Shown here: positions 3,875-64,000 of the stretch, piece by piece
Layout: the number at the start of each line of letters is the position of its first letter
How positions within the stretch are numbered: position 1 is the first letter of the stretch
IMG/VR virus record: IMGVR_UViG_3300036766_002289
Coordinates: 1 to 64,000 of that record
DNA length: 64,000 nt
Strand: one strand, 5' to 3'
Notes under the pieces: model-generated
What the model saw: the letters and a program-made list of their open reading frames with translations, nothing else
Database searches by the model: none
Told to the model about the DNA's origin: nothing
Position numbers and translations under genes: made by a program

Positions 3875-4798
3875 ATGAAGAATCATTGGTTAAATAAGAA
3901 AAAAGAGAAAGAAGAAGATTTTGATATAGAGTTGGCTTATAGTGAAATAACACCAGGCTTACGGCCTGTATGCATTTCTGGCATCGTAGACCCAACGCTA
4001 ATATCGGTTCAAACAGTTACTATTTCTCCACCTTTTGGGAATGCCCTTCTTAACGTATATGGGTATGTTGATGCGTATTGTAGTATTATACCCCCGTCTA
4101 GCATCGCAGACCCTACCTTGATAACGGTTCAAACAGTCTCATGTATGGATTTTGAGCCAGGTCAGACCGCACTATCAGAATTAGATGACTTTGCTAAACA
4201 TCATGTATCCCCTGCTGGATTTGGTGGTCGTGATTGCTCACCCAATTTAGAGATTGGTGATGGTAGTATGAAGTATACAAGGGAAATCCAGCTTGGCCCT
4301 TTCACTTTTAAGGACAGCGATCTTGGGATTGATATATTTTTGAATGATGTAAGAATGGGCTGGCTCAATTGTAGGGGTGAGGAAAGTTTATTTGCTTGGT
4401 TGAAGGAAAAGCACACTGCCAAGCAAGATGGCCCAGATCAAAACTATTGTTTGAAGAGTCTTTCCAATTACTCCATCAGCTGCACTTGCAGGGACACTCT
4501 GTTTTCAGAAGAATTGGTCTTATTTGGGAGAATACCAGACGGATATGATGGAGATTTAGGTGAGAGTTTTTATAAATTTGACCATGATAATGTTGTTCCT
4601 GGAAGTTTAGTGGTAACTTTTAATGGGAAAATAGTTCAAATACCAGCTTACGGTCACGAAGTTTGTGCAGAACTATTTGATATAGGCGTAAAAACCATTA
4701 GTGTTGATTACAATAAAGGAAATATTTCAATAGAATGGTCTAAAACACCTGGGGTAATTAACGTTAATCTGCAATATGAATATGAGGTTAAAGTATGA
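3875..4798 (+). CDS. hypothetical protein, MKNHWL family
   Basis: long ORF with SD; C-terminal VVPGS...VDYNKG...YEY module shared with 49579 and 50028. Confidence 0.6.
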   Translation: MKNHWLNKKKEKEEDFDIELAYSEITPGLRPVCISGIVDPTLISVQTVTISPPFGNALLNVYGYVDAYCSIIPPSSIADPTLITVQTVSCMDFEPGQTALSELDDFAKHHVSPAGFGGRDCSPNLEIGDGSMKYTREIQLGPFTFKDSDLGIDIFLNDVRMGWLNCRGEESLFAWLKEKHTAKQDGPDQNYCLKSLSNYSISCTCRDTLFSEELVLFGRIPDGYDGDLGESFYKFDHDNVVPGSLVVTFNGKIVQIPAYGHEVCAELFDIGVKTISVDYNKGNISIEWSKTPGVINVNLQYEYEVKV

Positions 4799-5025: not shown

Positions 5026-5766
5026 ATGAATATAACACCGCACAATCCCTTAGAAGGGCCAGCATCACAATTAACAATTCCGCTTCACGATGGCACAGAT
5101 GAACAAGTCTCTATAGTTGTTGTTCACAACAACAAACCAGAATATCTTAATCTTTGCCTGCAAAGTATTGCAGTAACCAGTTCTAACAATAACTACGAAT
5201 TAATTGTAGTCGATAACAATTCTGGTAAAGAATCTCAAGCTTTTCTAGATGAGATAGAAGAAGATGGCGTTAAAATAATTAGAAATGAGAAGAACCTACA
5301 TTGGAGTGCTGCTGCAAATAAAGGTGCCGAAGCAGCGTCCAAGAACTCAAAGTATATTATTTTCTTGCATCATGACGTTGTAATCATCAACCCAGCCTGG
5401 ATTGATCTTTTGATTAACGTCTCTGAATCCCAACAGTCTGGCATGGTTGGTCTAGAATTGGGCCAGTATTACATGCAGAATCAAAAAGTAGACTTTGTAC
5501 AAGAATGGTGTTTGTTGTTCAGTAAGGAATCCTGGAAGCAAATAGGTCCATTCCCAGAGACCTTGCCACAAATAGGTCATTCGTTTATAATGACCATGAA
5601 AGCTCAGTTGAAGGGTCTGAAGCCACAGGTGATGAAGAATCCAGTAGCGCATCATTACCATGTGTTTGCTTTGGATATTAATGAATTTGAAAGATTCACT
5701 GAGAGAGCTATGAATGAGATTCCAAGATTGATGCGTGAATTACAAACTATGCCAGTAACGAGGTAA
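5026..5766 (+). CDS. glycosyltransferase family 2
   Basis: VSIVVV, ELIVVDNNS, AANKGA, IIFLHHD GT-A motifs. Confidence 0.85.
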   Translation: MNITPHNPLEGPASQLTIPLHDGTDEQVSIVVVHNNKPEYLNLCLQSIAVTSSNNNYELIVVDNNSGKESQAFLDEIEEDGVKIIRNEKNLHWSAAANKGAEAASKNSKYIIFLHHDVVIINPAWIDLLINVSESQQSGMVGLELGQYYMQNQKVDFVQEWCLLFSKESWKQIGPFPETLPQIGHSFIMTMKAQLKGLKPQVMKNPVAHHYHVFALDINEFERFTERAMNEIPRLMRELQTMPVTR

Positions 5767-6485
5767 ATATGGATTTGAACTTAACTCTTTTTTCTTATAA
5801 AGATGACCGCTTAGATTTTGTGGTAAAATGGAAGCATCGTCCACAAATACATTTCAATGAAACCTATATTAATGGTGATTTACATGCTTGGCATTGTCAT
5901 TGGGAACCATTGAAGGTTTCGACGGCGGACCCAGATGCGGATTCTAAAGTTCATGATTTTCATGTTAAAGAATTGTCGGAATACAAACATCTTTCAGGTC
6001 ACGCAATTTTAGAAAATGATTTGGAGAAATGGACACTCCAAGGTTGCCGAATTACTAATTACGAAATTATAGATGAGATTCGCTTAATCGAGTTAACATA
6101 TGATGGGGTTAATTATATCAATAAAGGATGTAAACATGAATAATGATGTTATAGATTTGCTTAATAGGATTAAGTGCTGTGTAGATGATGACGAACTTCG
6201 TGTTGGATGTGGTTTTATTCCACACGGTAGTTCAAGACATTGGATTTTTCACGGCTCATATGATGTTTTAGAGAATGCTGCTGATGCTCGCATTTATGAA
6301 AAAGTCATGAATGATAGGTTGAATGAAGCTAAAGCATTAGGCTTAATCATTAACCAAACTGGTAAGGAAAAATGGTTGGTGAGTGAAAATTGGTTACTCA
6401 CTGAAGCTGGTGAGGCGTATCTTGGCCAGCGCACAAGGGGAAAGATAGTAGAGGATGAACCTAAAAGTAATTTTGGATTTGAATA

Positions 6486-7268
6486 ATGAACCGTAGAGAA
6501 TTTTTAAAGACTTCTGCTGCAATAGCGGTTACTGCTGCCATACCTATGGATATTATGGCAACAGAAACAAAAAGTCCTTTTATTGACTTCGCAGAAAAGA
6601 ATTTCAAAATAAATCATTGGGAAAAAGGTCTTATTCCTTATGAAAGTACTAAACATCATAAAGAATTAGCCAAAATCTATGATGATGAAAGATTTGTATT
6701 AGTAAAGAAGTATAGACAAGGTGGTTTTACTACTATGTCTGTACTTTATGCATTACATCAATGTCTAACTAAGATTGATTTTAGGTGTGCGTTTATCTCA
6801 AAATATGACAGTATGTCTAGGGCTGTTAAGGAGCGTATCATTAATCCCACCTTAGATTTAATGAGTTATTTAAAGCCAGATATTAAAAGAAGTAACAGTC
6901 ATTTGTTAGAATTTGAGCATGGTAGCAGGATTGATTTTCGCTGTGCAAGTAACCTTTGTGGTTGTGGTGTGAGAACTGACTTGTTCATATTTGATGAAGC
7001 TGCGTTTATAGGAAAAATGGACGAATTATACGCAGCAATTTATCCATGTGCTTCGATGGGTGGCAAGATATTTTTGGTCTCGACCCCGAATAGGCCAAGA
7101 GAATTTTTCTATAAAACCTATGAAGCGGCAATGAAGGGTAAGAACAAATATAAAGTATACGCCCCGAGTTGCTTTGAACATCCAAACTATACGCCAGAGA
7201 AAATTGCGTTGCTAAAAGGATATCTTGGTGAGAAGGGTTGGAAACAAGAGTGTTTGGCTGAATTTTAA
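6486..7268 (+). CDS. terminase large subunit ATPase-like domain with twin-arginine-like N-terminus
   Basis: KYRQGGFTT (Walker A-like), LFIFDEAAF (Walker B), VSTPN, WKQECLAEF; no nuclease domain; begins MNRREFLKTSAAIA. Confidence 0.8.
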   Translation: MNRREFLKTSAAIAVTAAIPMDIMATETKSPFIDFAEKNFKINHWEKGLIPYESTKHHKELAKIYDDERFVLVKKYRQGGFTTMSVLYALHQCLTKIDFRCAFISKYDSMSRAVKERIINPTLDLMSYLKPDIKRSNSHLLEFEHGSRIDFRCASNLCGCGVRTDLFIFDEAAFIGKMDELYAAIYPCASMGGKIFLVSTPNRPREFFYKTYEAAMKGKNKYKVYAPSCFEHPNYTPEKIALLKGYLGEKGWKQECLAEF

Positions 7269-7279
7269 GATGAACCTTA

Positions 7280-7990
7280 TTAACAATGAATGCTAAATGG
7301 ATTGATCTTAGAAACATAGTCTTCAACTTGTTTTTTGATGTCGCTCATTATTTCTTCTATTAATCTTCTATCACAGTCTTTCTTCCATTGCTCTGTCCAC
7401 AAACGTCCATCATGTTGTCCATCATATTGAATTTTTAGCTTAATGTCTAGAGTTTCTTGCGGCAAGAATGTATCTGGGTTTAAAGTTACTTGTGGATTTG
7501 CTACTGCTGATACGTTGTATTGAGGGCTGAACCATCTTGGTCTACCTGGAAAATATTCTGGGATTATATTATAACCATCTAAGCTATTATCAATCTGAAT
7601 TCTGAATTCAGCAAAAGTAAATACTTCATAATCGTTCCAGAGTCTGTCTAGGGTTACAACATACCAGTTATGTCCATCATCAGTACTGTAACGGTCACTG
7701 ATTTTACCAGTTAGTTTTCCTGATTCCACGTCTACCATCACACGACTACTTATTTCATGCATGAATGGCTTGAATTCCACATCTTTAGGTTGTTTGCCAA
7801 AATAGGTTAACTTAATAATTTTCCTGTCGTCCATAGCATTCTCTATTGCGATTATATCTAAAGCATCACTACATTTTATCATGTCTTTTATTATGGTTGC
7901 TTTTTTAAGTTCCGCTATAATTTCCTTATCTATTTCTTTTGTAATCTGAGTGGGAATGTCTTCAGCCTTTTGTAACCAATGATTTTTCAT
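7280..7990 (-). CDS. hypothetical protein, MKNHWL family
   Basis: 236-aa ORF; ACTATAT 6 nt upstream of the ATG. Confidence 0.6.
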   Translation of the reverse strand: MKNHWLQKAEDIPTQITKEIDKEIIAELKKATIIKDMIKCSDALDIIAIENAMDDRKIIKLTYFGKQPKDVEFKPFMHEISSRVMVDVESGKLTGKISDRYSTDDGHNWYVVTLDRLWNDYEVFTFAEFRIQIDNSLDGYNIIPEYFPGRPRWFSPQYNVSAVANPQVTLNPDTFLPQETLDIKLKIQYDGQHDGRLWTEQWKKDCDRRLIEEIMSDIKKQVEDYVSKINPFSIHC

Positions 7991-8079: not shown

Positions 8080-8691
8080 ATGGGTACTAAAACAATTTGG
8101 CTACAAAAAAGAAAGAAAGATGGTAAGTGCTTGCAATGCGGGAAGCTATCTGGCCCTAAATCTAAAGTTTATTGTAATAAATGTTTGATGAAATTCAATG
8201 ATAACTCTAAAAAACGTGTCAAAAAATTGTTAGAACAAGGTCTTTGTGCGCAATGTAGGAAGCCTTCAGATAAGCGTGTATGTCGAGATTGTAGTGATAA
8301 AAATAATACGAGAAGAATGGAAAAATTTAAAGTGAGGGAAAGTGCTGGCATCTGTATCAGATGTGGGAAAATGCCATCCGTATTAAATAATAGAAAATGC
8401 ACTGTTTGCTGTTTGAAACATAGTGCATGGACATATTTTCGTGATGGCAACAAATGGGTAAATTTACAAGAATTGTTTGATAGCCAAAAAGGCTTATGTC
8501 CTTATACGGGTAGGCAGTTGACAATAGGCTTAGATGCAGAAATTGACCATATCATCTCAAGGCATCAAGGTGGGAAAGATGAAATCTCTAATTTTCAGTG
8601 GGTGTATCGTGATATAAACAAAATGAAGGCTCATCAATCTCATGAACAATTTATTGATTTGATACGCGAGGTAGTCCAGTATTGTCTGTAG
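8080..8691 (+). CDS. HNH endonuclease with repeated CxxC zinc-binding motifs
   Basis: CPYTG..EIDHIISR..GG..N.QWV...NKMK HNH core; N-terminal CxxC repeats. Confidence 0.85.
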   Translation: MGTKTIWLQKRKKDGKCLQCGKLSGPKSKVYCNKCLMKFNDNSKKRVKKLLEQGLCAQCRKPSDKRVCRDCSDKNNTRRMEKFKVRESAGICIRCGKMPSVLNNRKCTVCCLKHSAWTYFRDGNKWVNLQELFDSQKGLCPYTGRQLTIGLDAEIDHIISRHQGGKDEISNFQWVYRDINKMKAHQSHEQFIDLIREVVQYCL

Positions 8692-15415: not shown

Positions 15416-15717
15416 TCTTAGAATTTACAGACAACCTATTTGACGTTTCTAGTGGTTTAGTGGTAGTTGATTTTTGGGGAGCTAGGTGCGGACCTTGTGT
15501 TGCAATGACTCCTATTTTTGAAAGTGTCTCCAAAAGCAATCCAGATGTAACCTTTGCTAAGGTGGATACTTCTGAAAATCAAAATGTGAGTAAGTTTTAC
15601 TCTATTAGTGCTATACCAACGCTATTGTTCTTTAAGCATGGGGAGTTAGTTAAGAGAGTAGTTGGCTTTCAATCTGAAATGCAACTAAGTAAGGTCATAG
15701 CAGAGTTAAGAAAATGA
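15412..15717 (+). CDS. trxA: thioredoxin
   Basis: VVVDFWGARCGPC, AKVD, ISAIPTLLFFK. Confidence 0.9.
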   Translation: MILEFTDNLFDVSSGLVVVDFWGARCGPCVAMTPIFESVSKSNPDVTFAKVDTSENQNVSKFYSISAIPTLLFFKHGELVKRVVGFQSEMQLSKVIAELRK

Positions 15718-16733
15718 AAAAAGTAATTATAACTGGAATCGGTGGTTTTGTTGGCGCACATGTTTTAGAATATTTCCTAGAAAAAACAGATTGGAATATC
15801 ATAGGGATAGATTCTTTCCGACATAAAGGTACTTACAGCCGCATTAATGAAATAGTTGGTTATAATGTTGGCCGAGTAAAAATATTTAACCATGATCTAG
15901 TGGCACCTATTGATATCCAACTAGAAAACCAAATTATAGGCAAGACATTAGAAAGTAACGGCAAACCCGTTGATTATATCATCAATATAGCTTCCGACAG
16001 TGCAGTAGAACGTTCAATTACAGACCCAGGCCCATGCTGGATGAATAACTGTAACTTGATGTTTAATATGCTGGAGTTTAGCAGAAGAGTTAAACCTAAG
16101 TTATTTTTGCACTTTAGTACGGATGAAGTTTATGGTGAAGCCGCACCAGACAAAGCACATCATGAATGGGACGTAATTCTACCTTCAAACCCTTATAGTG
16201 CAAGTAAAGCAGCACAGGAAGCATTAGCAATCTCGTATTGGCGAACTTATGATGTTCCATTATTGTTGCTTAACGTAATGAACATTATTGGTGAATGGCA
16301 AGATAAGGAAAAGTTCCTGCCTAAGTTGATTTATAAAGTGGCTACATGCCAGAAAATGCAGATTTATGGAGAGCCAGGCAAGATTGGTTCTCGTTTCTAC
16401 ATACATGCTAACAATATAGCTGATGCAATTATCTATTTATCTGATTTTGAGCCAGTCAAATATGGGACTCATCAACGACCAGATCGCTATAATGTTGTTG
16501 GAGATATGGAATTAGACAATTTGCAAATGGCACAGTATGTTGCCAAGATCATTGGCCAACCACTTAATTACGAATTAATCCCTTCTGAGATAGCAAGACG
16601 TGGCTATGACAAGAGATATGCTTTGGATGGCAGCAAACTGAAAAGATTAGGTTGGAAACATCCAAAATCTACGTTAGACTCGATTGAGCAAATTGTTAAA
16701 TGGACTATGGAACACCCCCATTGGTTGGTATAA
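15714..16733 (+). CDS. NAD-dependent epimerase/dehydratase (dTDP-glucose 4,6-dehydratase-like)
   Basis: TGIGGFVG, STDEVYG, PSNPYSASKAA (YxxxK), EKFLPK, DKRYALD. Confidence 0.9.
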   Translation: MKKVIITGIGGFVGAHVLEYFLEKTDWNIIGIDSFRHKGTYSRINEIVGYNVGRVKIFNHDLVAPIDIQLENQIIGKTLESNGKPVDYIINIASDSAVERSITDPGPCWMNNCNLMFNMLEFSRRVKPKLFLHFSTDEVYGEAAPDKAHHEWDVILPSNPYSASKAAQEALAISYWRTYDVPLLLLNVMNIIGEWQDKEKFLPKLIYKVATCQKMQIYGEPGKIGSRFYIHANNIADAIIYLSDFEPVKYGTHQRPDRYNVVGDMELDNLQMAQYVAKIIGQPLNYELIPSEIARRGYDKRYALDGSKLKRLGWKHPKSTLDSIEQIVKWTMEHPHWLV

Positions 16734-16735
16734 AA

Positions 16736-17302
16736 ATGAACAGAAGAACTTTTATCAAAACGGCAGCAATTAGTAGTGCGGCTTTAATGACTGGTAATTT
16801 AGCAATTGCTGCGACAGAGCCAATAAAATATGACTTTATTGAGCCAAAGTATTTGCTTCATATTTTGAAGAAACTGAGAGAATATCCTAGTAGATCGACG
16901 GATTATGATAGTCCAGTGTCGTCATCAATTTCTGAAATGTACAAAAATTATTGCTATATTACCCCAGAAATGATGAAGTTTGAAGAAAAGATTTATATTC
17001 CATTAATTGGAATTTCTAACATTCTCAGGCGTACAACACTTGGGGAGAATTCAACTGTAGATAAGACTTGGGTAGTTTTGAGTGAATCAGAAATTGATTT
17101 GTTTAATTTTACTGGTTCTAGTTTAAAACACCAAGAAACGGGGCATCCTTTAATGAAATATTGGGGTGCATGTTGTTGTGCGTGGCCACTTTATACATAT
17201 AAATATTGGCCCAAGGGATGGTTCTTATTAGGTCATGGGAAAGTTTTAAGGAAAAAAAGAAGTCAGTATGCTACGTTGCAAGTTAAGAGGAAAGAAAAAT
17301 GA
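16736..17302 (+). CDS. hypothetical protein with twin-arginine-like signal
   Basis: MNRRTFIKTAAISSAALMTGNLAIAA. Confidence 0.6.
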   Translation: MNRRTFIKTAAISSAALMTGNLAIAATEPIKYDFIEPKYLLHILKKLREYPSRSTDYDSPVSSSISEMYKNYCYITPEMMKFEEKIYIPLIGISNILRRTTLGENSTVDKTWVVLSESEIDLFNFTGSSLKHQETGHPLMKYWGACCCAWPLYTYKYWPKGWFLLGHGKVLRKKRSQYATLQVKRKEK

Positions 17303-23310: not shown

Positions 23311-23403
23311 TGGCTGCTAGCTTAACGGTATGAAGCGCTTGTGAATTCGGGCTTTAAATCCTGATGAAACTTGAGAAGTAGGGTTCAACTCCTTACGTGG
23401 CCA
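23311..23403 (+). ncRNA. tRNA-like RNA with expanded anticodon arm
   Basis: TGGCTGC/GTGGCCA, GCTT/AAGC D arm, TTCAACT T loop; about 38-nt anticodon region with internal TCGGG/CCTGA hairpin. Confidence 0.6.
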
Positions 23404-23404
23404 C

Positions 23405-49578: not shown

Positions 49579-50016
49579 ATGAAAAATTATTGGTTAGATA
49601 AGAAAAAGGGCGGATTTCCACAAGACGATGAATTTTCGAAAGTGGCGGGTTGTTGTGGTGATTTTGCTTGTAATTGCTCTGCTAATTTAGATATATTTTA
49701 TGGGTCTCAGTTTGTTCAAAATGAAGAGATTTATGGCCGAGCGATAGAACGAAACGAAAGTAAGGCTATTTGGAAAACTGAATTTACTCCTATATTAAGA
49801 GGCACAATGTTCGGTAAGGTCTATATGAATGGTGCCGAAATTTATGATTTTAGTTTTTGTTTTTCGGGCAGTGTTGTTTTGAAACAAGTTAATGATAGTG
49901 AGATGAAGATTTTGCGTATAAATTTAAAGGAAGCAACTGGAGAAATTGAAACTTGGTGGGATAAGTTGCCTATATTAGACACCATAATTAAGGTAAATTA
50001 CGAATTTATTAGATGA
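49579..50016 (+). CDS. hypothetical protein, MKNYWL family
   Basis: NLDIFY.S.F.QNE, TPILRGTM, terminal VNYEF. Confidence 0.6.
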   Translation: MKNYWLDKKKGGFPQDDEFSKVAGCCGDFACNCSANLDIFYGSQFVQNEEIYGRAIERNESKAIWKTEFTPILRGTMFGKVYMNGAEIYDFSFCFSGSVVLKQVNDSEMKILRINLKEATGEIETWWDKLPILDTIIKVNYEFIR

Positions 50017-50027
50017 ATTAGGAGACT

Positions 50028-50639
50028 ATGAAAAATTATTGGTTGGATAAAAGGTCTGATTTGCCAGGGTGGAAAGATGGTAAAATAGTTGACATGGATT
50101 TGTGGAAGGGCAAATGCTCTAAGTGTGGTGAGTATGAGTGGCCGTTTAACGATGAAAATATCATGATGCAAGGCGACCCTATGTGTGCATGTTACAGTGG
50201 TTATTGCAATTTAGATATTTTTTATCCTAGTAGGTTTATCCAGAATGAAACATTGGATGTTCGGAGTGATAATGGTTATATAACCACTTATCAGGTAATG
50301 CATACGCCTATTTTACCTGGAACAATGAGCGGTTATATTTGCTTAGAAGAACAATGTCCGCCACTTAATGGTTGGAGTTTCACAGTAAATTCGGAAGGTA
50401 AGTTTGAAGTGAAGCGATATGGTGAATGGGCGAAGAATTCTTTATCTGGCGATGACGACGTATTGACTTTGCAAAAATTAGCAGAAAGTGATGAACCACT
50501 AATTAGTTATTATGATGAAATTCATTATTGGGAAACAAAGTTAAATTGTGTGACAGGTATATTAGAACTTCATCATCATACTGTTGGACCTACACCAAAA
50601 ATAGTTGCATCCTACGAATATGATAAGTGTGAGGTTTAG
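50028..50639 (+). CDS. hypothetical protein, MKNYWL family paralog
   Basis: NLDIFYPSRFIQNE, TPILPGTM, terminal SYEY. Confidence 0.6.
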   Translation: MKNYWLDKRSDLPGWKDGKIVDMDLWKGKCSKCGEYEWPFNDENIMMQGDPMCACYSGYCNLDIFYPSRFIQNETLDVRSDNGYITTYQVMHTPILPGTMSGYICLEEQCPPLNGWSFTVNSEGKFEVKRYGEWAKNSLSGDDDVLTLQKLAESDEPLISYYDEIHYWETKLNCVTGILELHHHTVGPTPKIVASYEYDKCEV

Positions 50640-62737: not shown

Positions 62738-63220
62738 ATGGATATAATTCAACTGGAAAACCTTGTAAATCAAGGATTAAGTCAATATAAAATTGCAGAT
62801 ATTTTTGGTTGCTCGCAAAGTAAGATAAAATATTGGTGCATTAAACTTGGTATAAAGGCAAAACAAAAAATTAGGAAATGTGCTTTGTGCGGGGAAACGG
62901 ATGCCATTAAAATTTATAGGCATAAAGATGGTAGGTTTAGGTATCGTTGCAAGAAGTGTGATAATAAAAAAACTATTGAGCGGTTTAGGGATTACAAAAA
63001 GAAGGCCGTAGAATATAAAGGTAGTAAGTGTTTGATTTGCGGTTATTCTAAGTGTTTAGCGTCTTTAGAATTTCATCATAGGAGTCCAGATGAAAAAGAC
63101 CCGCGTTGGACTAAAATGCGAAATTGGCCCCTTTATAAAATAAAAACTGAATTGGATAAATGTGATTTAGTCTGTAGTAATTGTCATAGGGAGATTCATT
63201 ATGGAAGAGGTGAAATATGA
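62738..63220 (+). CDS. HTH + HNH endonuclease (same family as the tRNA-associated HNHs)
   Basis: LEFHH..EKD..ELDKCDLVCSNCHREIH. Confidence 0.85.
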   Translation: MDIIQLENLVNQGLSQYKIADIFGCSQSKIKYWCIKLGIKAKQKIRKCALCGETDAIKIYRHKDGRFRYRCKKCDNKKTIERFRDYKKKAVEYKGSKCLICGYSKCLASLEFHHRSPDEKDPRWTKMRNWPLYKIKTELDKCDLVCSNCHREIHYGRGEI

Positions 63221-63494: not shown

Positions 63495-64000
63495 ATGAAT
63501 AAAGAACGTAGGGGCTTTATGGCTTGGCTAGCTGGGTTTTTTGGTCTTGGCGCGGTTACGCAATTAGGTGCGCAACCAGTAAGTATGACCAACAATCATC
63601 CAGTATATGGGAAACAAGGTGAATGGATTCTTTACAAACAAGATGTGCCAAATAAAAAAGGCATTATTGTCTTTACAATGAATGTTGGTAATCTTCCCCC
63701 CTTAAAAGCAGAAGCCTACATTGAAAGGATCAAAGATCAGTTCCGTAAAAGTGGCAACCCACAAGATTGGCAAGACTGGCAGCATATTTTTATGCCAGTC
63801 CGCCATCAAGAAACTAAGGTTGAGATTTTTTCATTTGAAAAGTGTGATTACATAGAGCCTATGAAAGTTCTGGGGGCTGTCGTTCCTTTTGTAGCCCCAA
63901 GTAAAGAATCTGTAAAGGATTATGTCCTTTTGATGTTAGGTGCGCCAGTTGTTAAGGTTGAATTAGATGATACTCAACTTGAATTTGCATATAACAGTAC
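63495..64000 (+). CDS. chimeric protein (partial): Tat-like N-terminus + portal-like segment + neck gp13-like segment
   Basis: not in the ORF track (runs off the window); MNKERRGF.., VFTMNVGNLPPLKAEAYIE, VKDYVLLMLGAPVVKVELDDTQ. Confidence 0.6.
   Translation, partial: MNKERRGFMAWLAGFFGLGAVTQLGAQPVSMTNNHPVYGKQGEWILYKQDVPNKKGIIVFTMNVGNLPPLKAEAYIERIKDQFRKSGNPQDWQDWQHIFMPVRHQETKVEIFSFEKCDYIEPMKVLGAVVPFVAPSKESVKDYVLLMLGAPVVKVELDDTQLEFAYNS

Follow-up and report, generated by a model that had tools for sequence, protein, structure and literature searches.

A huge sediment phage carries, besides its normal DNA-packaging terminase, a second copy of only the terminase motor (ATPase) domain, preceded by a conserved leader of the twin-arginine (Tat) type. 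The gene is one of several in this phage group in which the same kind of leader is joined to copies of head, neck or packaging proteins. It lies in a 64,000-nt window comprising the first 64 kb of the 390,039-bp virus record IMGVR_UViG_3300036766_002289, which has a GC content of about 37-38% and 37 tRNA genes and comes from a sediment metagenome. IMG/VR labels the record a "provirus", but the parent contig is 590,099 bp and the nearest GenBank relative, the uncultured phage LR756511.1, is 595,163 bp with a TerL that is 67% identical, so the record is probably about two thirds of a ~0.6-Mb phage. The original prediction, made from sequence alone, had described a stand-alone terminase ATPase domain with Walker A/B and coupling motifs, no nuclease domain and a twin-arginine-like leader, outside a structural module, and this observation is confirmed. 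Its interpretation, a recurring combination of RR leader and structural-protein fragment serving as decoys or membrane-tethered paralogues, is only partly supported: the design is real and wider than was claimed, whereas the functional reading as decoys, Avs antagonists or membrane tethers has no direct evidence here.

Features of the window and of the remainder of the record (positions are identical in both numbering systems)
Position	Strand	Feature
5026..5766	+	Family-2 glycosyltransferase (GT2), the conserved upstream neighbour (GT2, then the paralogue, then PhoH further downstream)
6486..7268	+	Gene for the 260-aa RR-leader TerL-ATPase paralogue; its ATG overlaps the stop of the upstream ORF (TAATG)
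6486..6560	+	Tat-type signal peptide, aa 1-25: n-region MNRREFLK, h-region TSAAIAVTAAIPM, c-region DIMA ending in a predicted signal-peptidase site I-M-A|T (by inspection)
6579..7265	+	TerL (T4 gp17-type) ATPase domain, aa 32-260, without a nuclease domain
6651..6659	+	Site of the adenine-binding [YF]-Q motif of true TerLs; reads H-H (aa 57-58)
6705..6734	+	Deviant Walker A, KKYRQGGFTT (aa 74-83)
6984..6998	+	Walker B with the catalytic Glu, FIFDE (aa 167-171)
7080..7088	+	Coupling (C) motif, STP (aa 199-201)
15714..16733		Sugar epimerase/dehydratase gene
16736..17302	+	Second RR-leader ORF (188 aa), directly after the epimerase/dehydratase gene; passenger of unknown kind
63495..64000	+	Third RR-leader ORF (255 aa; runs to 64262 of the record), with the leader, a portal-derived motif (aa 59-90) and gp13-like N- and C-terminal segments
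69954..70289		Fourth RR-leader ORF (111 aa), in the record beyond the window
368239..370083		Complete TerL (614 aa), ATPase and nuclease domains
369358..369840		Terminase_6C (PF17289) match within that TerL
372396..374927		T4-type portal gene containing an intein-like insert

The terminase ATPase paralogue and the packaging terminase

The 260-aa protein, which begins MNRREFLKTSAAIAVTAA, is encoded by an intact ORF in a tightly packed array of genes, mostly on the + strand, and no alternative genetic code was needed to read it. Pfam Terminase_6N scores 24.3 bits against a cut-off of 22, and PHROG_2 "terminase large subunit" gives an E value of 1e-21. An AlphaFold2 model built on a 10-sequence alignment has a pLDDT of 82.6 and a pTM of 0.81, with only residues 1-27 disordered. 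A Foldseek search with this model places the T4 gp17 ATPase domain first (2O0J/2O0H, E about 1e-17 to 1e-18, with 3e-18 to 2O0J; TM 0.77), followed by other large terminases, and an Avs3-bound terminase (8DGC) is among the matches. The protein aligns to residues 68-297 of the phage's own TerL at 33% identity and ends exactly where the nuclease domain would begin. Its Walker A is of the same deviant type as that of the phage's own TerL (SKFRQAGLTT). Residues K75, R77, G79 and G80 of Walker A, D170 and E171 of Walker B and S199 of the coupling motif are invariant in family alignments of 10 to 11 sequences and conserved in 17/17 of the RR-leader forms described below.

The paralogue is not the packaging enzyme. 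An intact TerL containing both Terminase_6N and Terminase_6C lies beside the portal gene elsewhere in the record, Terminase_6C being found only in that TerL, and the other genes of the 375-382 kb stretch include a prohead-protease homologue and the MCP. The paralogue is located about 360 kb away in the record, among genes for GT2, an HNH endonuclease and PhoH, a neighbourhood conserved in two other contigs. That it is half of a split functional terminase, or a decaying remnant with a chance leader, is therefore very unlikely: the ORF is intact, gene order is conserved across genomes, and the motifs are under clear constraint. Some ATPase-only proteins elsewhere (P0187, P0196, P0234 and P0245 of the profile search below) carry a true-TerL-type N-terminus and may be split or truncated TerLs. 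The two conditions set in advance as refuting the prediction, a split terminase and an unconserved leader, were both examined, and neither applies. Scanning for promoters and terminators gave results at chance level.

Conservation of the leader

The N-terminus reads N-R-R-E-F-L-K, compared with the Tat consensus (S/T)-R-R-x-F-L-K, followed by a weakly hydrophobic 13-residue stretch rich in Ala, Thr and Ser and then D-I-M-A|T-E. The NCBI Tat model TIGR01409 (TAT_signal_seq) scores 18.3 bits against a curated cut-off of 16.7, whereas Pfam TAT_signal (PF10518) scores 21.7, just below its cut-off of 22.7. Seven of ten close homologues (45-57% identity) keep MNRREF(L/F/I)(K/Q), and five of these seven match TIGR01409 at E up to 0.1. 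The n-region is conserved while the h-region varies among small and hydrophobic residues, an A at -1 is common, and the site before the mature part reads V-M-A, I-M-A, V-I-A or P-I-A. Against the homologue on contig L006, the first 13 aligned codons show four synonymous and no non-synonymous differences, followed by conservative swaps in the h-region, the pattern of a translated, selected signal peptide. The remaining three homologues (P0008-P0010) truly lack the leader but retain the same motifs and gene neighbourhood; in L005 a stop codon lies 12 codons upstream of the start. A 31%-identical relative on another contig (L007) again starts MNRREF followed by a hydrophobic core. Scans for relatives returned none among genome contigs, and hence no clue to the host, and only one and three among viral contigs and metagenomes, respectively.

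A profile search of 1.84 billion representative proteins revealed a larger family, with 219 hits at E up to 1e-30. Of about 156 proteins analysed (the 150 listed representatives together with P0001-P0010), 64 end within 15 residues of the ATPase border and 54 continue for more than 100 residues and are classed as full TerLs, a classification that rests on protein ends as called in metagenomes. The RR leader is present in 17 of the 64 short forms and in none of the 54 rows classed as full-length TerLs (none of the 59 listed proteins of 330 aa or more). Inspection of two such ORFs confirms that they are complete and stand alone, one of them on a 39.5-kb contig of small phage-like genes. Other short forms carry different N-terminal modules, an RHH-like one and an "NYWL"-type tag. 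In a careful 19-row tree, the family plus one ORF of unknown kind from contig L010 forms the sister group of this phage group's TerLs (95/93), the two groups together are set apart from other T4-like TerLs at 100/99, and the leaderless clade is nested inside leader-bearing ones, which points to loss of the leader. In a quick 156-row tree, in which deep branches are weak, 13 of the 17 RR forms fall in one clade made only of short forms, the other four lie elsewhere, and well-supported branches force at least four gains or losses of the leader.

The leader could instead be a propeptide that brings the copies into the prohead and is removed by the T4-like prohead protease, as with the T4 capsid-targeting sequences. 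Several leaders are followed by a Glu (A-T-E, M-A-E, I-A-E), T4-type proteases cut after Glu, and the phage has a gp21-like protease (PHROG_207). However, the Glu is absent in several homologues (P0004, P0014, P0016), whereas a small residue at -1 is nearly universal, and the hydrophobic core and RRxFLK motif match the Tat model rather than the known hydrophilic capsid-targeting sequences, making this reading unlikely.

RR leaders on copies of head and neck proteins

A scan of the 390-kb record for an RR motif followed by a hydrophobic core, placed at an ATG, found four long ORFs, at 6486, 16736, 63495 and 69954; the original prediction had listed the first three. In the 69954 ORF, residues 40-108 are 58% identical to residues 670-741 of this phage's own portal (E 2e-27). 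The 63495 ORF, which starts MNKERRGFMAWLAGFFGLGA, carries a segment (residues 59-90) that is 59% identical to portal residues 502-533, and its C-terminal half matches the N- and C-terminal segments of T4 neck protein gp13 by PHROG_211 and by a PDB profile search; its predicted model is poor (pLDDT 63.5) and gave only weak fold matches to T4 portal-neck complexes. Eight of the nine sequences in its family alignment (the query and seven of its eight homologues, including the one in LR756511.1) have the leader M..RRGF.AWLAGFFGLGA. Because PHROG_211 hits only this ORF in the 390-kb record, we considered whether it is the phage's real neck protein. This was rejected because LR756511.1, a complete relative, has both a canonical gp13-like gene, in a 304-aa open frame, and the RR-leader mini-version; as the record is cut from a 590-kb contig, the true gene probably lies outside it.

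The 16736 ORF starts MNRRTFIKTAA, its leader is conserved, and TIGR01409 scores 15.8, just under the cut-off. Contrary to the original prediction, it shows no structural-protein homology: no similarity to the portal and no paralogue in the genome were found, and a search of the ESM Atlas gave only weak leads to small subunits of gluconate 2-dehydrogenase, which probably reflect the leader itself. The Tat models, which are short, miss most of the other leaders, namely 63495, its family, the LR756511.1 ORFs and the protein P0148.

In LR756511.1 the same scan finds about seven such ORFs, four of them within 25 kb. Their passengers are paralogues of the portal (E 1e-5), the prohead protease (E 2e-20; PHROG_207 E 6e-27), a paralogue of a PHROG_227 "tail sheath stabilizer" gene (E 9e-20), and the gp13-like adaptor plus portal and, weakly, the MCP. 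Given the separate canonical gp13-like gene, the RR versions are extra copies and not the structural genes themselves. In L007 and another contig, L009, the RR-leader ATPase gene is directly followed by a small ORF carrying the same portal motif.

Possible routing to the cell envelope

Our preferred reading, at a probability of about 0.5, is that these proteins are routed as pre-folded copies to the host Tat translocon and cell envelope. In this view, the ATPase domain folds in the cytoplasm, possibly binding a nucleotide there, is taken by its leader to the host TatBC receptor, is moved across or held at the inner membrane, and is cut by signal peptidase after I-M-A. In the envelope it would act as an NTP-primed or nucleotide-independent binding module for DNA or virion parts, not as a packaging motor, with conflict with superinfecting phages as one plausible setting. 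The analysis establishes the gene, its predicted fold, the lack of a nuclease domain, the separate true TerL, the conservation of the leader and the recurrence of the design, whereas Tat dependence, export, cleavage, NTP binding or hydrolysis, final location and role are inferred. The same kind of leader on unrelated passengers, which derive from fast-folding cytoplasmic proteins, is what one expects of a general host pathway transporting folded proteins, and Tat fits better than Sec. Basic residues, in many cases Lys, follow many h-regions, a Sec-avoidance feature of Tat signals. RR-leader ORFs also sit beside sugar-modifying genes, here GT2 and the epimerase, and glycosyl- and sulfotransferase genes in contig L058, a weak hint of an envelope role. 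No TatA or TatC gene was found in the phage record, and the only sequencing runs containing the sequence are sediment DNA runs, with no RNA run among them.

The main difficulty, which remains unexplained, is that Walker A, Walker B and the C-motif are perfectly conserved in the RR forms, arguing for NTP hydrolysis, although the periplasm has no ATP. Only the adenine-binding [YF]-Q motif has changed, reading H-H in 9 of 17 and keeping Q in 5 of 17 RR forms, against Q in 48 of 54 full TerLs. The leaderless sister clade and the RHH-like and NYWL-type modules further suggest a cytoplasmic activity aimed at different places. Either the nucleotide is bound before export, as Tat substrates do with cofactors, or the domain stays on the cytoplasmic face, tethered at the membrane or at TatBC.

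The second possibility is the main rival, though a doubtful one. The tethered ATPase would work on DNA at the membrane, for example by helping to reel in or position a roughly 0.6-Mb genome together with the membrane-targeted portal and adaptor pieces. The conserved NTPase motifs, the missing nuclease domain (DNA would be moved without being cut), the leaderless and RHH-fused relatives (which point to a cytoplasmic, DNA-related activity), the co-occurrence of RR-leader ORFs built from channel-lining pieces of the portal and gp13, and the portal-motif ORFs that follow the gene in L007 and L009 favour it. However, positive charges at the N-terminus and a hydrophobic stretch of only 13-15 residues predict a passenger outside the cytoplasm, the A-x-A-like sites suggest that the leader is cut off, and no Tat-type signal is known to hold a domain on the cytoplasmic side. 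Complex prediction for the ATPase (residues 28-260) with the 63495 protein (residues 52-255) scored 0.00, which counts neither for nor against binding.

Anti-defence decoys are unlikely on present evidence. In that reading, fragments of proteins sensed by STAND/Avs-type receptors would bind those sensors without activating them, and the leader would sequester or remove the bound sensor at the Tat translocon by "hitch-hiking". Support is circumstantial: the passengers overlap the published Avs targets TerL, portal, portal adaptor, MCP and other core structural proteins (PMC13581612), and Avs3 bound to a terminase (8DGC) is among the fold matches of the ATPase domain. The prohead protease and the sheath stabiliser are not on the list quoted from that paper, a decoy has no need of conserved catalytic residues, export would remove the fragment from the compartment where the sensors act, the same passenger set is explained simply as head and neck genes, and no paper describing phage-encoded TerL or portal decoys was found.

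A broader reading is possible but tentative: a group of ~0.4-0.6 Mb sediment phages may use the host Tat pathway to place a whole panel of pre-folded copies of their own head, neck and packaging proteins in the envelope, including the TerL motor domain, pieces of the portal, the gp13-like adaptor, the prohead protease and a sheath-stabiliser paralogue. This would be a previously undescribed phage strategy; it could sense or block superinfecting phages or carry host pattern-recognition sensors away by hitch-hiking, and the TerL module might be exported with a nucleotide already bound, as a single-use switch. Targeted literature searches, a comparative study of jumbo phages, the huge-phage paper and a 2026 Tat review yielded no description of Tat-type leaders on terminase, portal, neck or protease paralogues, and the review mentions no phage-encoded Tat substrate. 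Against the sources searched, the domain architecture and gene family are new, whereas the ATPase fold and the signal type are known. Terminase, portal, neck and protease proteins are textbook cytoplasmic assembly parts, and conserved export-type leaders on diverged copies mean that huge phages have given these folds a second job, probably at the cell envelope. If exported, they would be the first phage-encoded family of Tat substrates in the literature searched and a case of a P-loop DNA-motor domain working, or being stored, outside the cytoplasm, raising the question of nucleotide-loaded export; if tethered, they point to a membrane-bound DNA-handling device in phages with very large genomes.

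Compared with T4 gp17-type TerLs (Terminase_6N plus Terminase_6C; PDB 2O0H, 3CPE), the paralogue shares the predicted ATPase fold, the motifs and the clade-specific deviant P-loop, and by these would work like a TerL ATPase domain. It differs in lacking the RNase-H-like nuclease domain, in the replacement of the first ~67 TerL residues by a signal peptide, in its H-H at the Q-motif, and in its location among auxiliary genes, outside the packaging role. With bacterial Tat substrates, such as cofactor-binding periplasmic enzymes, it shares the sequence criteria of n-region, h-region and A-x-A-like site, and a passenger that would fold and may bind a nucleotide in the cytoplasm; it differs in being phage-encoded and in its DNA-motor ATPase with intact catalytic residues, no exported P-loop motor being known. 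Partial, internal or split TerL products (T4 gp17' forms; ATPase-only ORFs with a TerL-type N-terminus in metagenomes) are likewise ATPase-only, but they keep the TerL N-terminus and the packaging context, whereas this is a separate, diverged gene family with its own targeting leader. The T4 periplasmic proteins used in superinfection and lysis control (antiholin RI, Imm, Sp) are also phage-encoded and sent to the envelope by an N-terminal signal, and RI is thought to sense periplasmic DNA from superinfecting phages (PMC8385771); there is no sequence or fold relation, that paper describes RI's leader only as a cleavable signal peptide, and the functional analogy is a hypothesis only. ATPase-only "terminase" hits are common in metagenomes (64 of about 156 top representatives), and they can be mistaken for the packaging gene in phylogenies and genome annotation.

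N-terminal modules on structural fragments and TerL paralogues

A second recurring N-terminal tag, MKN[YH]WL[DNQ][KR], heads nine ORFs. Two of these, at 49.5-50.6 kb, carry a segment that is 29-30% identical to residues ~107-237 of the major capsid protein. Similar tags head some ATPase-only TerL paralogues from other samples (proteins P0139, P0152, and P0244). These ORFs may represent a second series of genes joining a tag to a structural fragment. Five further ATPase-only TerL paralogues from other samples (P0132, P0135, P0237, P0250, and P0255) start with an RHH-like module (MQVNITIPDDWK...), suggesting a DNA-binding domain fused to the motor domain. On a metagenome contig (L010), an actin/ParM-like ORF lies directly upstream of a TerL-like ORF, which groups with the paralogue family (95/93) but continues past the ATPase border.

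Extent of the record and the portal insert

IMG/VR classes the 390,039-bp record (G000) as a provirus cut from a 590,099-bp contig. The closest complete relative is a 595,163-bp phage, and a canonical gp13-like neck gene is missing from the record, indicating that the "host" flank is probably phage sequence trimmed by mistake. The portal genes of this phage and of its 595-kb relative, LR756511.1, contain a large intein-like insert, spanning roughly residues 90-320, that begins with Cys and ends in HNC.

Coordinates of the additional features
Feature	Reference	Positions	Strand
Tagged ORF	window	3875-4798	+
Tagged ORF	window	7280-7990	-
Tagged ORF	window	49579-50016	+
Tagged ORF	window	50028-50639	+
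Tagged ORF	record	79389	
Tagged ORF	record	147069	
Tagged ORF	record	383198	
Tagged ORF	record	383413	
Tagged ORF	record	383630	
Portal gene	record (L011:490-3021)	372396-374927	
Portal gene	LR756511.1	531014-533587	
tRNA genes (37)	window	21736-61314	
tRNA-like call	window	23312-23404	
HNH-type ORF	window	8080-8691	+
HNH-type ORF	window	62738-63220	+
Paralogue of the ORF at 8080	record	218930-219745	
Small ORF	window	5769-6143	+
Paralogue of small ORF	record	388083-388499	-
Actin/ParM-like ORF	L010	98-1111	
TerL-like ORF	L010	1121-2038	

tRNA genes and neighboring ORFs

The tRNA genes lie mostly in clusters at 36.4-42.6 kb, accompanied by one odd tRNA-like call with a two-base "anticodon." HNH-type endonuclease ORFs rich in CxxC motifs lie near two of the RR-leader genes, with the ORF at 8080 having a paralogue at 218.9 kb. 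The small ORF two genes upstream of the RR-leader TerL-ATPase paralogue has a 33%-identical paralogue of its own at the far end of the record.
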